From positions 392,872 through 456,871 of the forward strand of contig NW_013657658.1 in the NCBI RefSeq assembly GCF_000142905.1: a stretch of DNA of 64,000 nucleotides, in the 5' to 3' direction. Made by a program: the position numbers and the translations under genes. Within the stretch, counting starts at the first letter, position 1. Every line of letters starts with the position of its first letter. Below the pieces are notes generated by a model, which saw only the letters and a program-made list of their open reading frames with translations, was not told where the DNA came from and did not search any database. Positions 55,149 to 64,000 of the stretch are shown here, piece after piece. This DNA is from Thecamonas trahens ATCC 50062 (lineage: Eukaryota; Protista; Apusomonadida).

Positions 55149-56905
55149 TCAGAGAATGTACATGTAGATGAGAAGAGACACAAGCGAGAGCGATGCGCCG
55201 GCAGCAATAATGGTCGGGACAGAGCTGGCGGACTGGCCCGACGGCTGAGGCACGACTGGCTCGGCCGCGATAGGGGTCTTGGTTGTGGCTTTTGGGGCGG
55301 CCGAACTGTTGCGCCTGCGCAATGTGGCCTCGAGCTCTGCAAGATGGGGGCTTGACTTGCGAGTCGCGCGTATCGGGGAAGTCGGCGAGTAGGGAGCTGT
55401 GCGCGACTGCGAGGGAGCTGGCGGCGGCGTGCTGGGGTCCAAGTTGGCGCTCTGGAGCTGGCTGGCGGTGTCGTGGATGGCCGGAGCGACGGATCGGGAG
55501 AGAAAGCCATCGAGGGTGACGGACATGTCCTTGATGGCTCCTGTGACAAAGCAGTCTCCCGCATCGGCTGCTGGCAGCTGAGTCTCGTAAACGCCGGCAG
55601 TGTGGAGGAGGCAGCGTGTGTCCGGAAGCGAGGCGGCGCTGGCGGGCGCAACGAGAACGGCGTCTAGATCGTGGCGGAGCGAGGTCTCCAGTGGAGTTGG
55701 GCGCGACACGACACCAATATCTTTGAGCGTGTCGACAGCAGATTGGGTGTTGGCGAGCGAGCAGTCGGCGGCGAGGCCCTTGAGGGTCTTGACCGTGAGC
55801 AGGCGCGCGCGCTGCGATCGGGCGCTGGGGCTGTCATCGTCGCCAACCTCCAAGGACTGCGGGATAGCCGCCGACGAGGTGGCTGCTGGCTTCCAGGTTG
55901 GGGCCATGGTGGCGGTAGCTGTGACGATTTCCAGCGGGAACAACGACTGCGCGCCTTCAGCGTTGTCGGGGCGGCCAAGAGTGGGCGGACAAAGACCGCG
56001 ACGACCAAACGCTGCTCCGTGCCAAGCATGCCGAGAGATGCGGTCCAGACAGGCTTGCTCGCTCCGGTCGGGTTGGAGATGGTGAAGCCAAAGGGAGCAA
56101 CCATGTCCTCGATGATCCAGCCGTCGCGGGCGACGACGTCGAGCGTCGTCTTCATCGACACGATGGACGAGACGTGGCCGAGGATGTGGCCAAACTGCTG
56201 AGCAAAGACGTCGACCTCGTCGGCGGACGTACCAGCCACATACGTGTAGCGCCCAGAGGCGATGTTGGCAAGATGCTGCAAAAACGTTGCATTGTGCTCC
56301 GATGACATACCCACGGTGTGGAGCGAGAGCTGATGGCCGGCCGGCAGGCAATCGATCGTGGTGCGGAGGACGCTCGTTGTTGCGTCGGGGTCGTGGGCCT
56401 CGCCATCGGTAAAGAGAATGATGGTGTGGAGGCGCTCTTTGTTGACGCTTGCCGCCGCCAAGTGAAATGCGGTCTGTAAGGCGGCACCCATGGCGGTTCC
56501 ACCTGAAGCTCGCAGCTTCTCCACTGCTGCAGTTGCCAGCTTGTATGCCTGGCCGGTGCGGACAAGGATGCGCGGTGACGAGCTGAACTCGATGAGCGAG
56601 AACGTAATGCCGCGCTCCTCCAGCAGCAGCAGGACCTGCTTCATGGCATCCTTCAGCAGCTGCATTCGCGAGCCGGCCATCGATCCTGACGAGTCGAGCA
56701 GGAGCGTCACCGCCGACGATGCCACCGGCGCAGAGGCAGGTGCCTCCACCGTCACGTCGACCCGGAACATGTCATCAGAACCGACGACTCGGTCGACCGA
56801 GCGGCTGACGCTGGCGGTGGTGGAGGCATTGGCATCTACCGGGTTTATGCCGTTGCCCATGCCCTTCACCACGCATGCCGTCTGTCCTGTACCGCTCGCA
56901 GCCAT
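55149..56905 (-). CDS. von Willebrand factor A (vWA) domain protein with a C-terminal hydrophobic tail; one apparent 1-nt frameshift at ~55970
   Basis: MIDAS motif LLLDSSGSM, GGTAMGAAL, IILFTDGEA, LHTVGMSSEHNATFLQHLANIASGRYTYV. The frame changes at GCC CC GAC (minus-strand C-run 55968-55971) into ORF 55149..56351, which ends IIAAGASLSLVSLLIYMYIL. The 5' end lies next to an N gap, so upstream exons are possible. Confidence 0.8.
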
Positions 56906-56968
56906 ATCACCTTTACACTCTTATGATGTTAACTCGAGAGATGTATGTCCCTCCCTCCCCCCCCCCCC

Positions 56969-57214
56969 NNNNNNNNNNNNNNNNNNNNNNNNNNNNNNNN
57001 NNNNNNNNNNNNNNNNNNNNNNNNNNNNNNNNNNNNNNNNNNNNNNNNNNNNNNNNNNNNNNNNNNNNNNNNNNNNNNNNNNNNNNNNNNNNNNNNNNNN
57101 NNNNNNNNNNNNNNNNNNNNNNNNNNNNNNNNNNNNNNNNNNNNNNNNNNNNNNNNNNNNNNNNNNNNNNNNNNNNNNNNNNNNNNNNNNNNNNNNNNNN
57201 NNNNNNNNNNNNNN
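56969..57214. other. Assembly gap flanked by poly-C runs
   Basis: Run of N characters. Confidence 0.99.
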
Positions 57215-57482
57215 CCCCCCCACCCGCTACCGTGTCCATGTGTGGGTATATTCCATGAGCGACATCGGCTTGTGTGTGGGGGTGGGTATTGGTCGAGTTC
57301 CAAAGCAGGCCGCGGGTGTTCCAGTGCGAGTGCGGGGAGGGAGGTTACACCGGCAGACGACGGAGCAAATCGGGCCGGCGCTTTGCCGTCGATGCGCTCG
57401 CCCACCCATGTCATCGACCGACAGGCGGCAATTATGTTGGGGTGTACTTATTCAGGATTCGCTACGAGGGCCTCCAAGGTGA

Positions 57483-58490
57483 CACTCATTAGGTGTCCTC
57501 GTTGAGGATCAGCTTGCGAGCAGTGCCGACGCCGTTGTACTTGACAAGCTTTCGGGCGAGGGCGGTGTTGATCACAGACGCGCCAAGACCCTTTCGCCAC
57601 ACGTGATCTGGGAGCATCATCTTGATCCTGGAGCCGCAATCGGCCTTGGACATACCACCGACCGACTTGGCCTCCTGCAAGGCCATGGCCAACTCTTCCA
57701 GCCCGAGCTCGACGGCGTCGGTGCGGCCGTGGCTCTCATCAGACTCACTAATGGAGCCTGTGGAGCTTCCAGCGCCACACCAGAGCGCGTTGCTGCAGCC
57801 ACGTTTGCAGACGGACTCGACTCGGACGTGGCCGCCGTGCTTGCCTCTGGTCACAACGTGGCTGGTCTGGACTGCATCGGCCAGCGCGAGGTTAAGGAAG
57901 GCGGGTTGGAGCTTTGCACCCCCGTGCATCGCGCGCATCTCGTCGCCGATGGCCTTGAGCGTGGGGAGGGAGCCGCTGTTGCCCTTCTTGACCACATTGG
58001 CGAGGGCAACGGCGGAGTGAGCGGCGTCGGCGGGTTGGCCGGGCTCGACGAGGTGAGCTCGGGCTCGGGCCTCGATCACGTGCGGGCGCTGAGCATCGGG
58101 CTGGCGCTGGCGCGTGCGCTCGCCGAGGTCCACTCGATCACGGGCGACGGGCACGGCTCGCTCAAGCCATCCAACGTGGTGGTGGACACAAGAGCGGACG
58201 GATGGTCATCAAGAGCAACCAGGGGACGATGGCGGTGGTGCCATCGGTGGCGTGCATGGCGCCGGAGCAGCTGCGCGAAGCCGACGAGGGTTTCGAGGGC
58301 GGCATGTTCACTTTTGGCATGCTCCTCTACGAGATGCTCATACGAGCGCCGGCGTTTGATGGCAGCAACGCCATGGAGGTCGGTCGTCAGGTCCTCACCA
58401 GCAACGCTGCTAGTGCGATGGCGGGTGATTCATCCGGCGGTGTTGGTCGGTCGATCTGCTGGTGAGGCCCATGGCGCAGGAGGCTGCGGA
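57483..58490 (+). pseudogene. Degenerate Ser/Thr/TKL-type protein kinase (pseudogene or pseudokinase)
   Basis: Eroded subdomains: LGLLQGHGQLFQPELDG..AVALIRL (I-II), ALSIGLALARALAEVHS..GHGSLKPSNVVVD (HRD replaced by HGS), no DFG, MAPEQL (VIII), MFTFGMLLYEML...AFDG (IX), and ICW*GP (XI with a stop at 58463-58465). Frameshift at ~58200. Confidence 0.65.
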
Positions 58491-58547
58491 TGTGCTGGCG
58501 GCGGCGAGGATGCGGGCGCGGTGCTGGGGGAGTAAAGGCGGTGGGTG

Positions 58548-61500
58548 TTATGGGTGGCGGCGGAGGATAAAGGGGGAGCGATTGGAGAATACAGCGAGGA
58601 GGCAATCGGTATCAGAGGGGTGGGGGGTGGAGAGGCCGGTTTGGTCGGCAATGGTGATGCGGGTGGAGTTGTTGCGTGGGTGGGTGGAGGTGGAGTGGGG
58701 GGCGTGGAGCCAGAAGGAGGAAGGGTGGCGGGCGTGGAGGGTGTAGCCGGTGGGGGAAGGGTGCCACTTGAACGTCTCGTCTGCGTCTGAGTGGGAGACC
58801 AGGTCAGGCAGCTGGCCATCCGCACTCGGCAGCGCAATCACACCCTGCACAGACTTGGTGTGGCCCCCCAGAACCTCACACGAGGCACTGTCCGCGGTGT
58901 ACCGCATGGTACCCGTGCCGTCGTCCGCAGGATGCCACACCCGGATCGTGTTGTCCCCGACCACGAGACCAGGACGGGCAGCTGGCCATTCGCACTCGGC
59001 AGCGCAATCACACCATTCACACCGCTGGTGTGGCCCTCCAGCACCTCACAGGAGGCACTGTCCGCGGTGTACCACACGGCGCCTGTCCCGTCGTCTGCAG
59101 CATGCCACACCCGGATCGTCCTGTCCCACGACCACGAGACCAGGACAGGCAGCTGGCCATGCGCACTCGGCAGCGCAATCACACCCTGCACACCGCCGGT
59201 GTGGCCCTTCAGAACCTCACAGGAGTCCCTGTCCGTGGTGTACCGCATGGCGCCCGTCCCGTCGTCCGCAGGATGCCACACCCGGACCGTCTTGTCCTCT
59301 GACCACGAGACCAGGACAGGCAGCTGCGCAATCACACCCTGCACACACTTGGTGTGGCCATCCAGCACCTCACAGGAGTCCCTGTGCGCGGTGTATCGAA
59401 TGGCGCCCGTCCCGTCGTCCGCAGCATGCCACACCCGGATCGTGTTGTCCCACGACCACGAGACCAGGACAGGCAGCTGGCCATGCGCACTCGGCAGCGC
59501 AATCACATCCCGCACACCGTAGGTGTGGCCCTTCAGCACCTCACAGGAGGCACTGTCCACGGTGTACCGAATGGCGCGCGTCCCGTTGTCCGCAGCATGC
59601 CACACCCGGATCGTCTCGTCCCCCGACCACGAGACCAGGACAGGCAGCTGGCTGTCCGCACTCGGCAGCGCAATCACACCCTTCACATTGCCGGTGCGGC
59701 CCTCCAGCACCTCACAGGAGGCACTGTCCGCGGTGTACCGCATGGCGTCTGTCCTGTCGTCCGCAGCATGCCACACTCGGATCGTGTCGTCGCTAGACCA
59801 CGAGACCAGGAAGGGCAGCTGGCTATCCACACTCGGCAGCGCAATCACACCCCGCACAAGGCTGGTGTGGCGCTTCAGCACCTTACAGGAGGCACTGTTC
59901 GCGGTGTACCGCATGGCGCCCATCCCGTTGTCCGCAGGATGCCACACCCGGATCGTCCCGTCGGCCGACCACGAGACCAGGACAGGCAGCTGGCCATCCA
60001 CACTCGACAGCGCAATCACCCCCCCCACATTGCCGTCGTGGCCCTTCAGCACCTCACAGGAGTCCCTGTTCGCGGTGTACCACATGGCGCCCGTTCCGTC
60101 GTCCGCAGGATGCCACACCCGGATCGTCCCGTCGAACGACCACGAGACCAGGACAGGCAGCTGGCCATCCACACTCGACAGCGCAATCACCCCCCCCACA
60201 TTGCCGTCGTGGCCCTTCAGCACCTCACAGGAGTCCCTGTTCGCGGTGTACCGCATGGCGCCCGTCCCGTCGTCCGCAGCATGCCACACCCGGATCGTGT
60301 CGTCGAGCGACCACGAGACCAGGACAGGCAGCTGGCCATCCGCACTCGGCAGCGCAATCACACCCTGCGCACCGTAGGTGTCGCCCTCCAGCACCTCACA
60401 GGAGTCCCTGTTCGCGGTGTACCGCATGGCGCCCGTCCCGTCGTCCGCAGCATGCCACACCCGGATCGTCTTGTCCTCCGACCACGAGACCAGGACAGGC
60501 AGCTGGCCATCCGCACTTGGCAGCGCAATCACACCCTTCACATACATGGTGTGGCCATCCAGCACCTCACAGGAGTCCCTGTTCGCGGTGTACCGCATGG
60601 CGCCCGTCCCGTCGTCCGCAGCATGCCACACCCGGATCGTCCCGTCGAACGACCACGAGACCAGGACAGGCAGCTGGCCATGCGCACTCGGCAGCGCAAT
60701 CACACCCCGCACATCGCCGGTGTGGCCCTCCAGCACCTCACAGGAGTCCCTGTTCGCGGTGTACCGCATGGCGCCCGTCCCGTCGTCCGCAGGCCACACC
60801 CGGATCGTCTTGTCCTCCGACCACGAGACCAGGACCGGCAGCTGGCCATCCGCACTCGGCAGCGCAATCACACCCTCCACATCGCTGGTGTGGCCCTCCA
60901 GCACCTCACAGGAGGCACTGTACGCGGTGTACCGTATGGCGCCCGTCCCGTCGTCCGCAGCATGCCACACCCGGATCGTGTTGTCTCTCGACCACGAGAC
61001 CAGGACAGGCTGCTGGCCATCCGCACTCGGCAGCGCAAGAACACCATTCACACAGTCGGTGTGGCCCTCCAGCACCTCCACGCGTTCACCAGTTAGCACG
61101 TCAAGTACGTCCACATTATCCTTACATCCACCAGCAACCAGTGAGCCACCGATGTTGATGACTTTTTCGTACGAGCCAACAAAGCGAAAGCGCTCAGCAC
61201 CACGATGCGTGACAGGGTCCACGGCTCTCGATGGAATGAAAGCCTTAGACGAGGCATCTTTGCTCACAGCAGCAACCAGGTCCTTCACGGCTTTGGACGC
61301 CTTGCCATAGGCAAGTCGGGCGACAAGCTCGGTCTCGACGTGCGACGTACCGCTCTCAATGATCTCGCGTGAGAGCGACAGCGCACGCTCAACCTCGTCA
61401 ACGTCTTTGACTCCTTCACAGCCAAGGCGCACAACACAACGCAGATCATTGAGGAGGCCACCAAGCGAGTCGTCTGCGCGGGCTTTCATCCACGGCCAGG

Positions 61501-63619
61501 AGAGAGCAACCGCAACGGCAGCATGGTTCGCTCCGGCTGCAATCAGGTGTGAAATACCGTGGGTGACGATCCAATTGGAGGCAGTGCCAGAGGTCATGGT
61601 CTCCCTAGCGGACTCTGGTGTGGCGCCAGGCGGAGGCACCCCGGCGACAACGGCGAGGTGACGGGCAGGAAGGGAAGGGATGTCGTCAAAGCACACCTCT
61701 AGCCGATGGCGAATGTACTCGAGGTGCAGATCGTGCAGCTCGACTACGGTTATGGAGCCGCCATCCGCGGCAACGACGCGCAGCAACGACGTGTTGGCGA
61801 GGGCATCGAGGGCCCTAGCAAACTTGATATTGCTTGCGTCGATCGCGGAGCGGAAGTTGGCGACGTCGATGGGCGCGTCTGATGGAAAGACGGCGAGCAT
61901 GGCGTAAATAGCCCGCGCCACCTTGCGGACACGCTTGAGGATGGCACCGCCGAGGGTCCAAGTGATGATGTCGAAAATGTGGGCGTACTTGGCGTCCGAT
62001 CCGCCGCAATCATCGCGGTGCTCATCCATGGCAAGCTCAGTTGCATCTGCAGCGTCCTCAAAAGCGTCGTCAAGCGCAGCCTCGCCAGAAATGGACGAGC
62101 CAAGGACGGCGAGGGCGAGGGCATGGCCACGGCAAAAGGTCGCGAGGGAGACGATGCGGGGATCGTCGAGAGCAAGGGTGATTGCCCACTCAGGTGAGCC
62201 CTTGGCGAGGTAGTTGCGAAGGACAACAGCAGCGTCGTCCGGGGCAAAGGTACCAAGCTCGATGGAGGAGGCGGAGTTGGTAGCAACAGCGGCGTTACGC
62301 GAGGTGACGAGGACGGCATGCGGGGCTGCGATGTGGTTGGTGAAGACGGAGGCCTGGCGGGTGGTCCACGCGTCGTCGAGGATGAGCAGGATGCGGGTGC
62401 CGGCGGCGGCGAGGGCCCGGGTCTTGGCAGCAAGAATGGGTTGGAGGTCATTGAGGCCAGCTTGTGCATCGATTGCGCAACCGAGGCCTTGCTTCAGGAA
62501 GTAGGACATGCGGCTGGCAATGGCGATGGGAGATGTCTTGTCCTCACCGAGAGGGAGCCAGAAGACGGAGAAGACCGAGGTGATGGCGGGGTGGATGGCG
62601 ACATCGGCAGCGAGTGACGACTTGCCGACGCCACCGAGCCCGTTGACACCGACGACTGAGACGTTGTTCGCACCAAGAAGGACATTAATGACCGCAGCGC
62701 GAGTGTCAGGGAGCGGGTAGTACTCGGATGGGTTAGGTGGCGGCGGCATGAGTAAAGGCAAACGCTCAATAGAGCAAGAGTCGCGCAAGACATCGACGAC
62801 AGCGACTGCAACGCGGGAGACGAGATCGGAAAAGCTGTCGTGGCCGTTACGGTCGCCCTGGACGCACCCCCACTCAAGCAGCGAGTGTATGAGCTTGACT
62901 CGTTCACAGCGCGAGTAGTACCATGCTTTCACGTTCGGGTCCTCAGAGTGTTCAGCCTTGTGGACAGCACCCTTGGCGTGAGCAAGATCACCAAAGGCAG
63001 CGATAAGGTCAGGGCCAATCCAAGCCTTAGCCTGCTCCTCATGCACGGCGCCGGTGACACGCTCAATGATGTCGGCGTCAGCGAGCCGGGCATCCCCCCA
63101 AACGCTATTGAACGGCAGGGCTTCATGCATGAAGACAGGGATGATGACGGGGTTATTGTCGAGGGCAAAGCGCACCTCTTCCATGGCAAAGCCCGAGGCG
63201 AGGAGATAGGGCGAGACTGAAATAACAATGATGCGTGAGCCCTCAAGAAGGGCATGCACGTCGTCCATGCCACTGCACCTGACGCCGAACCAGTCCAGCC
63301 TGTCCACAAACGCCCTGACACCACGTTGTAAGAGCTCCCGCCGAACGTCGATCATGAAAGCCTTGTCGTGCGAGCCATGCGCGAGAAATACGTCATACTT
63401 CTTGATGGGGGGCGGCTTGATCGTAGAAGATGGACCGGCTGGTGACGATGACGTCGCTTCAATTAGCATGTTCTGGGGGACTGCGGAGGAAGGGGTGGCC
63501 GAGCTGGCCGAGCTGGCGTTGGCGGTGAGCAGCGGGCGGGGGCGCTTGGCAGAACCCTGCTGCACTGGTGCGTGTGCAGGGCGCGGGGGGTCCCCTGTGT
63601 TCCCTGGGGCGGGGTCCAT
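58548..63619 (-). CDS. TIR - NB-ARC - WD40 (NLR/Apaf-1-like STAND) protein, intronless, about 1,690 aa, with one apparent 1-nt frameshift at ~58956
   Basis: TIR: YDVFLAHGSHDKAF...GVRAFVD...SRIIVISVSPYLLASGFAMEEV...IIPVF. NB-ARC: Walker A GLGGVGKS, Walker B ILLILDDAW, VLVTSRN, GLPL-like CRGHALAL, MHD-like LHDL. An Apaf-1-like helical segment (HGISHLIAAG...SWPWMKAR) is followed by 14 WD40 repeats. The last 1.5 repeats and tail continue in ORF 58548..58964. Confidence 0.9.
58760..61080 (-). repeat. 14 near-identical 171-bp (57-aa) tandem WD40 repeats
   Basis: Consensus EVLxGHTxxVxGVIALPSADGQLPVLVSWSxDxTIRVWHAADDGTGAMRYTAxxxSC. DNA-level identity is obvious (e.g. ccacgagaccaggacaggcagctggcc recurs every ~171 bp). 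Repeat 2 has a 3-nt in-frame deletion and repeat 11 an 18-nt in-frame deletion. Confidence 0.95.
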
Positions 63620-64000
63620 GGGCACAGTGAGAGGGGTGTGCGGAGTGTGCGGAGTGTGCGTTGCGTGTGACGGCGAGTGCGACAGGCGGCGTTTGGGCGA
63701 TTTTTTGGATATCGGGCGAGTGCCGGGGGAAGGGCCGGGGGAGAAGGTATGATTATTTCAATGAGAGTTAATTGATGGGGTTGGGCATGATTAATTGAAC
63801 GAGAAATGATTGATGTGGTGATGGTGGGGTCAGGGGGTGGGTGCATGCATGCAAGGAGGGTGTGTAGTTGGGCAAAAAGAAGACAGAATGCGTTACTCGG
63901 TATTCCCGTGTGGTCCCCCACCACAGTACTAACCAAGCCTCATGCTGCTTGACTTCCGAGAGCGAGACGGGATCGGGTATTTTCAGCATAGGATGAACGC

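Follow-up and report, generated by a model that had tools for sequence, protein, structure and literature searches.

A TIR-NB-ARC-WD40 gene of the protist Thecamonas trahens is a probable member of an expanded NLR-like receptor family with mosaic TIR cassettes

Plants and bacteria are known to possess receptors that join a TIR domain to an NB-ARC domain and signal by NAD+ cleavage; animals make use of SARM1. The plant TIR-type NLRs (TNLs), such as RPP1, ROQ1, RPS4 and RUN1, place an N-terminal TIR domain before an NB-ARC switch and a C-terminal sensor of leucine-rich repeats (LRRs) and C-JID. Proteins of the Apaf-1/Dark/CED-4 type and the fungal HNWD/NWD proteins (HET-E, HET-D and NWD2) are further STAND ATPases to which a WD40-bearing receptor can be compared. 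To our knowledge, the spread of TIR-NB-ARC receptors among other eukaryotes is largely unexplored. Apusomonads are the sister group of animals and fungi, Thecamonas branching next to Opisthokonta, and our full-text search found, within the library covered, no paper in which TIR, NB-ARC or NLRs are connected with Thecamonas or other apusomonads. Here we analysed a window of 64,000 nucleotides from Thecamonas trahens ATCC 50062 (contig NW_013657658.1, positions 392,872 to 456,871), which carries on its minus strand a gene for a TIR-NB-ARC-WD40 protein. We consider it moderately probable that this gene belongs to a family of NLR-like STAND receptors that is specific to this species, has expanded in it, and operates and diversifies as proposed below. 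The overall NLR-like STAND kind is already known and is found here in an apusomonad with repeat diversification of the fungal style; the new element is the mosaic of TIR cassettes.

The open reading frame (ORF) encodes, in order, a TIR domain, a helical linker, NB-ARC, winged-helix (WHD) and HD2-like helical domains and a WD40 array. It occupies 58838..63619 (minus strand; 1,593 codons, assembled stop at 58838-58840), the frame being open over 58838..63625 with its first ATG at 63619. The product was 100% identical to the NCBI/UniProt entries P0001 and P0002 of T. trahens ('WD repeat protein, variant 1/2'). These public models begin at the internal Met118 (MDDVHALL, 63268) and miss strands A-B of the TIR domain, and their Pfam lists therefore contain no TIR. 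As the frame is open to 63625, TIR_2 was matched from model position 1 (residue 77), and the annotated paralogues begin at a methionine equivalent to Met50 of this gene, the complete TIR domain most likely belongs to the predicted product. P0001 and P0002 treat different blocks of WD40 units as introns, and in variant 2 the splice leads into sequence downstream of 58838. Both variants look like artefacts of read alignment to near-identical repeats. Public models that drop half of the TIR domain and splice across repeats lead database surveys to under-count such genes.

The TIR domain comprises residues 75 to ~170 (63110..63397, minus strand), with YDVFLAHG as strand A. Pfam TIR_2 was matched at residues 77-169 with 37.3 bits (cut-off 28) and Pfam TIR with 22.0 bits (cut-off 21.3); PADLOC gave weak ThsB-like TIR matches only. 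The catalytic glutamate of SARM1 is E642, and that of plant TIR domains lies in the WCxxEL motif on the alphaC helix. A phmmer search against PDB sequences aligned the domain to the Arabidopsis AtTIR 3jrn (E 3e-4) and set SGFAMEEV (63173-63196) opposite SSWCLDEL, so that the second Glu of this motif, residue 148 (codon 63176-63178), stood where plant TIR domains have their catalytic Glu. Glu148 was invariant, in one of only four invariant columns, in an alignment of 25 TIR sequences, in which all three TIR types of this family were represented together with further TIR proteins of Thecamonas and relatives from metagenomes. When an AF2 model of the TIR domain alone was searched with Foldseek, the best matches were the plant NLR TIR domains of RPS4, RPV1, SNC1, RUN1 and RPP1 (E 3e-5 to 1e-4), followed by SPARTA, AbTir and SARM1; the scaffold TIR domains of Hydra TRR-2, MyD88 and TLR1 were likewise among the matches. 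The domain is a probable NAD-cleaving enzyme with Glu148 as the putative catalytic residue.

Between the TIR and NB-ARC domains lies a helical linker of ~130 residues with no Pfam match. NB-ARC (62081..62698, minus strand) was matched by Pfam at residues 308-513 with 50.4 bits (cut-off 23.5), and its nearest solved relatives by sequence were the plant proteins NRC1 and NRC2 (E 6e-8). The NACHT profile scored 14.3 bits, below its cut-off of 26.7, NB-ARC being the better match. Motif searches on the minus strand located a P-loop with Walker A (GLGGVGKS, 62618-62641), Walker B (LLILDDAW, 62366-62389), the sensor-1 Arg in LVTSR (62297-62311) and a GLPL-like motif, CRGHALAL (62111-62134); the G, K, DD and TxR residues were nearly invariant across 61 aligned sequences. 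The MHD-like His-Asp motif LHD (61730-61738, minus strand) was found opposite the MHD of NRC2 (LHDM) in the alignment to PDB sequences. It falls within the winged-helix and HD2-like domains (61280..62080, minus strand), which were recognised from an AF2 model and Foldseek. The model of residues 60-760, built from 61 sequences, had a mean pLDDT of 83 and a pTM of 0.69, and its best Foldseek match was ADP-bound Apaf-1 (1z6t, E 1e-14); against full-length Apaf-1 (3sfz), 500 columns were aligned with an rmsd of 5.7 A. Further matches were the RPP1 tetramer core, NRC2, CED-4 and Dark, the Foldseek probability being 1.00 for Apaf-1, RPP1 and NRC2.

The WD40 region in frame (58958..61279, minus strand) consists of a leader blade and 12.5 tandem units of 171 nt (57 aa), and Pfam WD40 gave 128 bits in 8 stretches. 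A preliminary description made from the DNA alone had proposed a TIR, NB-ARC and WD40 receptor in a unicellular eukaryote, with intact Walker and LHD motifs, a helical domain, a TIR glutamate near 63176 and an Apaf-1-like layout; all of these features were recovered by the profile searches, alignments and models above, and the host is indeed a protist. The same description had suggested a profile search, and TIR_2, NB-ARC and WD40 were matched while Pfam APAF1_C was not detected in the protein.

The gene shares with plant TNLs the N-terminal TIR domain with a Glu at the WCxxEL position, the NB-ARC switch and a C-terminal repeat sensor. Unlike the plant proteins, however, its sensor is WD40 and no LRR was matched by Pfam, the long helical linker separates TIR and NB-ARC, the HD2 resembles that of Apaf-1, and Phe replaces the Trp of the motif. 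A profile of the plant partner domain EDS1_EP had no match in the Thecamonas genome, and the control genomes gave nothing either. With Apaf-1, Dark and CED-4 it shares the NB-ARC-WHD-HD2-WD40 layout, Apaf-1 being the best structural match and two propellers (14 units) being probable, whereas the phmmer sequence match to Apaf-1 was below threshold. A further difference is that TIR takes the place of the caspase-recruiting CARD, for which Pfam gave no match in the Thecamonas protein, and that the Thecamonas family is multi-copy and hypervariable, with homogenised repeats.

In the organisation of its repeats, the gene resembled the fungal HNWD proteins. Tandem Repeats Finder reported a period of 171 nt at 58795-61078 (13.5 copies, 87% matches), and the translated array gave 12 complete units of 57 aa, with one at 56 aa and one at 51 aa. 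Ten full-length units were 88% identical in DNA; the identity was 51% within six hypervariable codons and 92% in the rest of the unit. A Nei-Gojobori tally over 34 distinct in-register units, drawn from this gene and from 13 paralogous loci, gave pN 0.59 and pS 0.24 (ratio 2.5) at the hypervariable codons 9, 10, 12, 32 and 34, and pN 0.061 and pS 0.094 (ratio 0.65) at the other 52 codons. The tally is crude, takes no account of recombination among the repeats and is not a formal site-model test. Codons 10 and 12 flank a conserved Val (V11) after GH, and codons 32 and 34 flank a conserved Asp (D33) of SWSxDxT; we take these to be top-face positions of the WD40 propeller. Paired hypervariable codons around conserved residues are the arrangement in fungal HET-D/E (PMC1805685). 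Conserved WD40 units, a few hypervariable face positions with, on a crude count, a sign of positive selection, and exchange between loci were all found here, and the likeness extends to near-identical units across loci and to pseudogenes. The Thecamonas gene differs from HNWD in carrying NB-ARC instead of NACHT, TIR instead of HET or other fungal effectors and a unit of 57 aa instead of 42 aa, and in belonging to Apusomonadida.

A search of the T. trahens assembly (28.7 Mb) detected 21 NB-ARC and 27 TIR_2 profile matches, and residues 1-760 as a query found at least 12 close paralogous loci with the NB-ARC part 76-91% identical. The family comparison was based on 30 partial loci and one extra stretch. 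Open frames of 1,271-1,733 aa were found for the paralogues on contigs C97, C64, C59, C67 and C17, and those on C57, C39, C38, C71, C79 and C49 were broken or fragmentary (open frames of 202-881 aa on C57, C39, C38, C71 and C79). The 171-nt unit occurred genome-wide in at least 180 copies in at least 17 loci. The units of this gene were often nearer to units of other loci (95%) than to their own neighbours (84-94%), as is expected under exchange between loci.

A second kind of exchange involved the effector end of the gene. The DNA of the TIR domain and helical linker (residues ~67-290; 62751..63422, minus strand) was not homologous to the corresponding cassettes of paralogues that are otherwise 96% identical. 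By blastn, the 5' flank together with nt 1-197 of the coding sequence (CDS) showed 92.6% identity to the paralogue on C59 and 85.5% to that on C64, no match was obtained over CDS nt 198-869, and the identity was 96-97.7% from CDS nt 870 on. At the protein level, the TIR parts of this copy and of these two paralogues were 53-57% identical and the chassis 88-89%. The cassette was 41% identical over 211 aa (E 5e-48) to the metagenomic protein P0013, but merely 35% over 122 aa to the paralogue P0004. Judged from these alignments, genes that are otherwise 96% identical have exchanged their TIR-linker cassettes. The family chassis carries three or more TIR types, all of which keep the Glu. Expansion, fragments, homogenised repeats with five hypervariable top-face codons and cassette exchange are together hallmarks of a repertoire for non-self recognition.

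More distant Thecamonas relatives had other layouts. One paralogue carried ankyrin repeats N-terminal to TIR-NB-ARC (L014:1285-4407; G000:C70:68811-71935), with 40% identity over residues 30-671. P0016 (AMSG_05240; G000:C22:116642-118585), 274 kb upstream on the same contig as the present gene, gave TIR_2, TIR and NB-ARC matches and no WD40 match at E <= 0.001.

Outside Thecamonas, an exhaustive HMMER scan of 1.84 billion representative proteins placed the Thecamonas family at the top, followed by P0013 at E 1e-75 and then by a drop to E 8e-26 with ~30% identity. The nearest outsiders were metagenomic proteins with TIR-NB-ARC-LRR, -TPR or -WD40 layouts. P0013 (L032:2251-5478; contig ERZ27290035 k119_959857) has the plant-TNL layout TIR_2-NB-ARC-LRR and was 37% identical to the TIR-NB-ARC part of this gene. 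Its contig is probably from a related protist, as both neighbours of P0013 have one Thecamonas homologue each (53% and 44% identity), and a relative of Thecamonas thus probably has an architecture like that of TNLs. The metagenomic protein P0021 has TIR-NB-ARC-WD40, and the three-part layout is thus not unique to Thecamonas. P0021 adjoins other TIR genes, nSTAND genes and a transposase in a bacterial-looking context similar to a defence island, and it shares the three-part architecture, with matches to TIR_2, NB-ARC, WHD, APAF1_C and WD40. Its identity was, however, only 27% where the two proteins matched and 24% in alignment A1, its canonical 40-aa WD40 repeats are not homogenised and it is without the helical-linker cassette. 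TEP1, NWD1 and NWD2 have been described as TeTIR-NACHT-WD40 NADases in animals and a few protists (bioRxiv 10.64898/2026.09.21.753143). These proteins likewise combine a TIR-like NADase effector, a STAND ATPase and WD40 in non-plant eukaryotes, but their TIR-like effector domain is a remote one, extended to 200-350 residues, and is joined to NACHT, in contrast to the canonical TIR_2 and NB-ARC of Thecamonas.

The following mechanism is proposed for the family. A double WD40 propeller, which would have 14 blades with read-through of the 3' end, would keep NB-ARC closed and ADP-bound, and its top face would bind a non-self or altered-self protein. Binding would free the switch, and nucleotide exchange would then make the protein oligomerise into a ring resembling an apoptosome or resistosome. 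In the ring, the TIR domains at the N-termini would be clustered and could build composite active sites, centred on Glu148, that cleave NAD+, and the resulting NAD+ depletion and/or a nucleotide signal would cause cell death or growth arrest. Diversity might arise from two sources: repeat units would be exchanged within and between loci while five surface codons diversify, and whole TIR-linker cassettes would be swapped between chassis. We infer the ligand binding, the oligomerisation, the NADase chemistry and the immune or allorecognition role. The preliminary reading of the gene as a ligand-gated, oligomerising NADase receptor for immunity or cell death is partly supported: the predicted domains, motifs, modelled folds and family fit it, and the function is suggested by homology and the evolutionary signature.

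Several observations weigh against this reading. The AF2 model of the TIR domain alone was of modest confidence (pLDDT 66), this TIR type carries Phe where SxWC has Trp, the sequence RGHALAL is a degenerate form of GLPL, and the excess of nonsynonymous changes rests on the crude tally described above. The read sets examined gave no direct sign of transcription. Two metatranscriptomes yielded only two short contigs apiece; those of the subsurface metatranscriptome X1, 61970-62168 and 58647-58830, had 100% and 99.5% identity and are weak evidence at best. The Thecamonas-labelled runs X5 and X6 covered the locus, one contig (62667-63495) spanning the whole TIR domain, but these runs behaved like DNA, since they showed no joints and their contigs crossed a putative intron. 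To these points is added the state of the 3' end. Unit 13 was one base short in comparison with units 10 and 12, at a G run in the hypervariable codon 32 (~58957), and the assembled frame closes at 58838 after an out-of-frame tail of 38 residues. The array continues out of frame at 58548..58964 (minus strand), where the alternative frame, reached only via the 1-nt deletion, completes unit 13 and goes on through unit 14 and a Pro/Ser/Thr-rich tail to a stop at 58548. The pieces on either side of the frameshift and of the putative intron were examined separately. The single exon claimed in the preliminary description thus held for TIR-NB-ARC and 12.5 repeats and failed for the interval down to 58548. 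If the 3' end is read through, the 14 units would fit two seven-bladed propellers, which are probably present; as assembled, this copy may be a truncated sensor or a pseudogene.

The rival explanation that survives best is indeed that this copy is a decaying pseudogene, in which the frameshift of unit 13 is real, the second propeller is broken and any function resides in other paralogues. The deletion itself agrees with this explanation, as do the many clearly broken or fragmentary paralogues, and the contigs of the X5 and X6 runs reported no indel variant at ~58957. Fungal NWD families likewise include pseudogenes, with intact repeats (PMC1805685). On the other hand, the 1,550 upstream codons are open with all motifs intact, a deletion in a G run is a typical homopolymer sequencing error, and X5 and X6 may be the source data of the assembly itself and thus not independent. 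Decay of this copy appears unlikely, though it deserves to be taken seriously.

It is also conceivable that the family acts in allorecognition between conspecific cells, as fungal HET-D/E do, and not in defence against pathogens. The family has the evolutionary signature of the HNWD genes, in which WD40 units are homogenised and exchanged between loci, hypervariable codons come in pairs and pseudogenes occur; this would agree with such a role, but the same signature is equally expected for pathogen sensing, and bacterial TIR-STAND proteins sit in defence-island contexts. Moreover, we know of no evidence of cell fusion or heterokaryosis in Thecamonas, and we regard allorecognition as improbable. 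Least probable of all is a non-enzymatic TIR scaffold, as in TLR/MyD88, or an Apaf-1-type apoptosome sensing an endogenous ligand: the structural match of the ATPase part to Apaf-1, the presence of Hydra TRR-2, MyD88 and TLR1 among the TIR matches and the Trp-to-Phe change point that way, but the Glu is invariant across family types and outgroups, the top TIR matches are NADase-competent plant domains, and for a sensor of an endogenous ligand one would not expect 12 or more copies whose binding faces are hypervariable.

With the NLR-like receptor family as the preferred interpretation, a broader and more tentative proposal can be made, namely that apusomonads may run a combinatorial NLR repertoire in which at least three interchangeable TIR cassettes are mounted on a common NB-ARC chassis, with WD40 sensors (LRR in P0013) and fungal-style repeat shuffling. 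If this is true, TIR-NB-ARC receptors with NADase output would be no plant speciality: eukaryotes would either have had them since ancient times or have put them together repeatedly from bacterial components. The family would inform the debate on whether TIR-STAND immunity of eukaryotes was inherited or repeatedly acquired from bacteria, and would bear on how very distant lineages use the same genetic means to build and diversify repertoires of the NLR type. Thecamonas would also provide a tractable single-cell system for TIR signalling without EDS1 or Thoeris-type partners.

The remaining features of the locus concern its flanks. A possible 3' intron at 58524-58799 (GT..AG, 276 nt), followed by a terminal exon at 58409-58523 (...MNHPPSH*), would extend the gene over 58409..58799 on the minus strand. 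This assignment is uncertain: the annotated paralogue P0005 uses the same junction and tail, and unspliced contigs, one from the X1 RNA library across the donor and one from X5 across the acceptor, speak against the intron.

The 5' flank (63620..64000, minus strand), containing the promoter/5' untranslated region, was duplicated along with the gene, as its 381 nt also precede at least 8 of the paralogues, with an identity of 93-98%. Its distal part (~63840-64000) is a dispersed repeat, present at at least 15 further loci and at least 25 in all, many of which do not adjoin family members. This repeat may be a small mobile element supplying a promoter, and probably caused the contig to break here, the right edge of the window (64000) being the end of contig C22 (456871).

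Most paralogues were ~3 kb or less from the end of their contig, towards which their 5' end pointed, and a subtelomeric location of the family was considered. Long TTAGGG arrays were detected at the starts of two contigs (C1:23-598 and C2:19-420), showing that the telomere repeat of T. trahens is of the vertebrate type, TTAGGG, and that some contigs reach chromosome ends. No such array was found at this contig end or in the family loci examined, and the subtelomeric location was not supported; assembly breaks in repeats are the simpler reading of the contig-end positions.

Downstream of the receptor gene, at a distance of ~2 kb, a protein with a von Willebrand factor A (VWA) domain (69.5 bits) is encoded at 55664-56905 on the minus strand. 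Between the two genes, the ORFs 56490-57482 and 57603-58535 on the plus strand and 57489-58154 on the minus strand gave no Pfam match, and a 'dead kinase' next to the receptor gene was accordingly not recovered. Farther away in the window, a run of very long ORFs, each encoding between 2,437 and 3,983 aa, fills ~44 kb (10059-54426, minus strand) and shows a strong AT skew.

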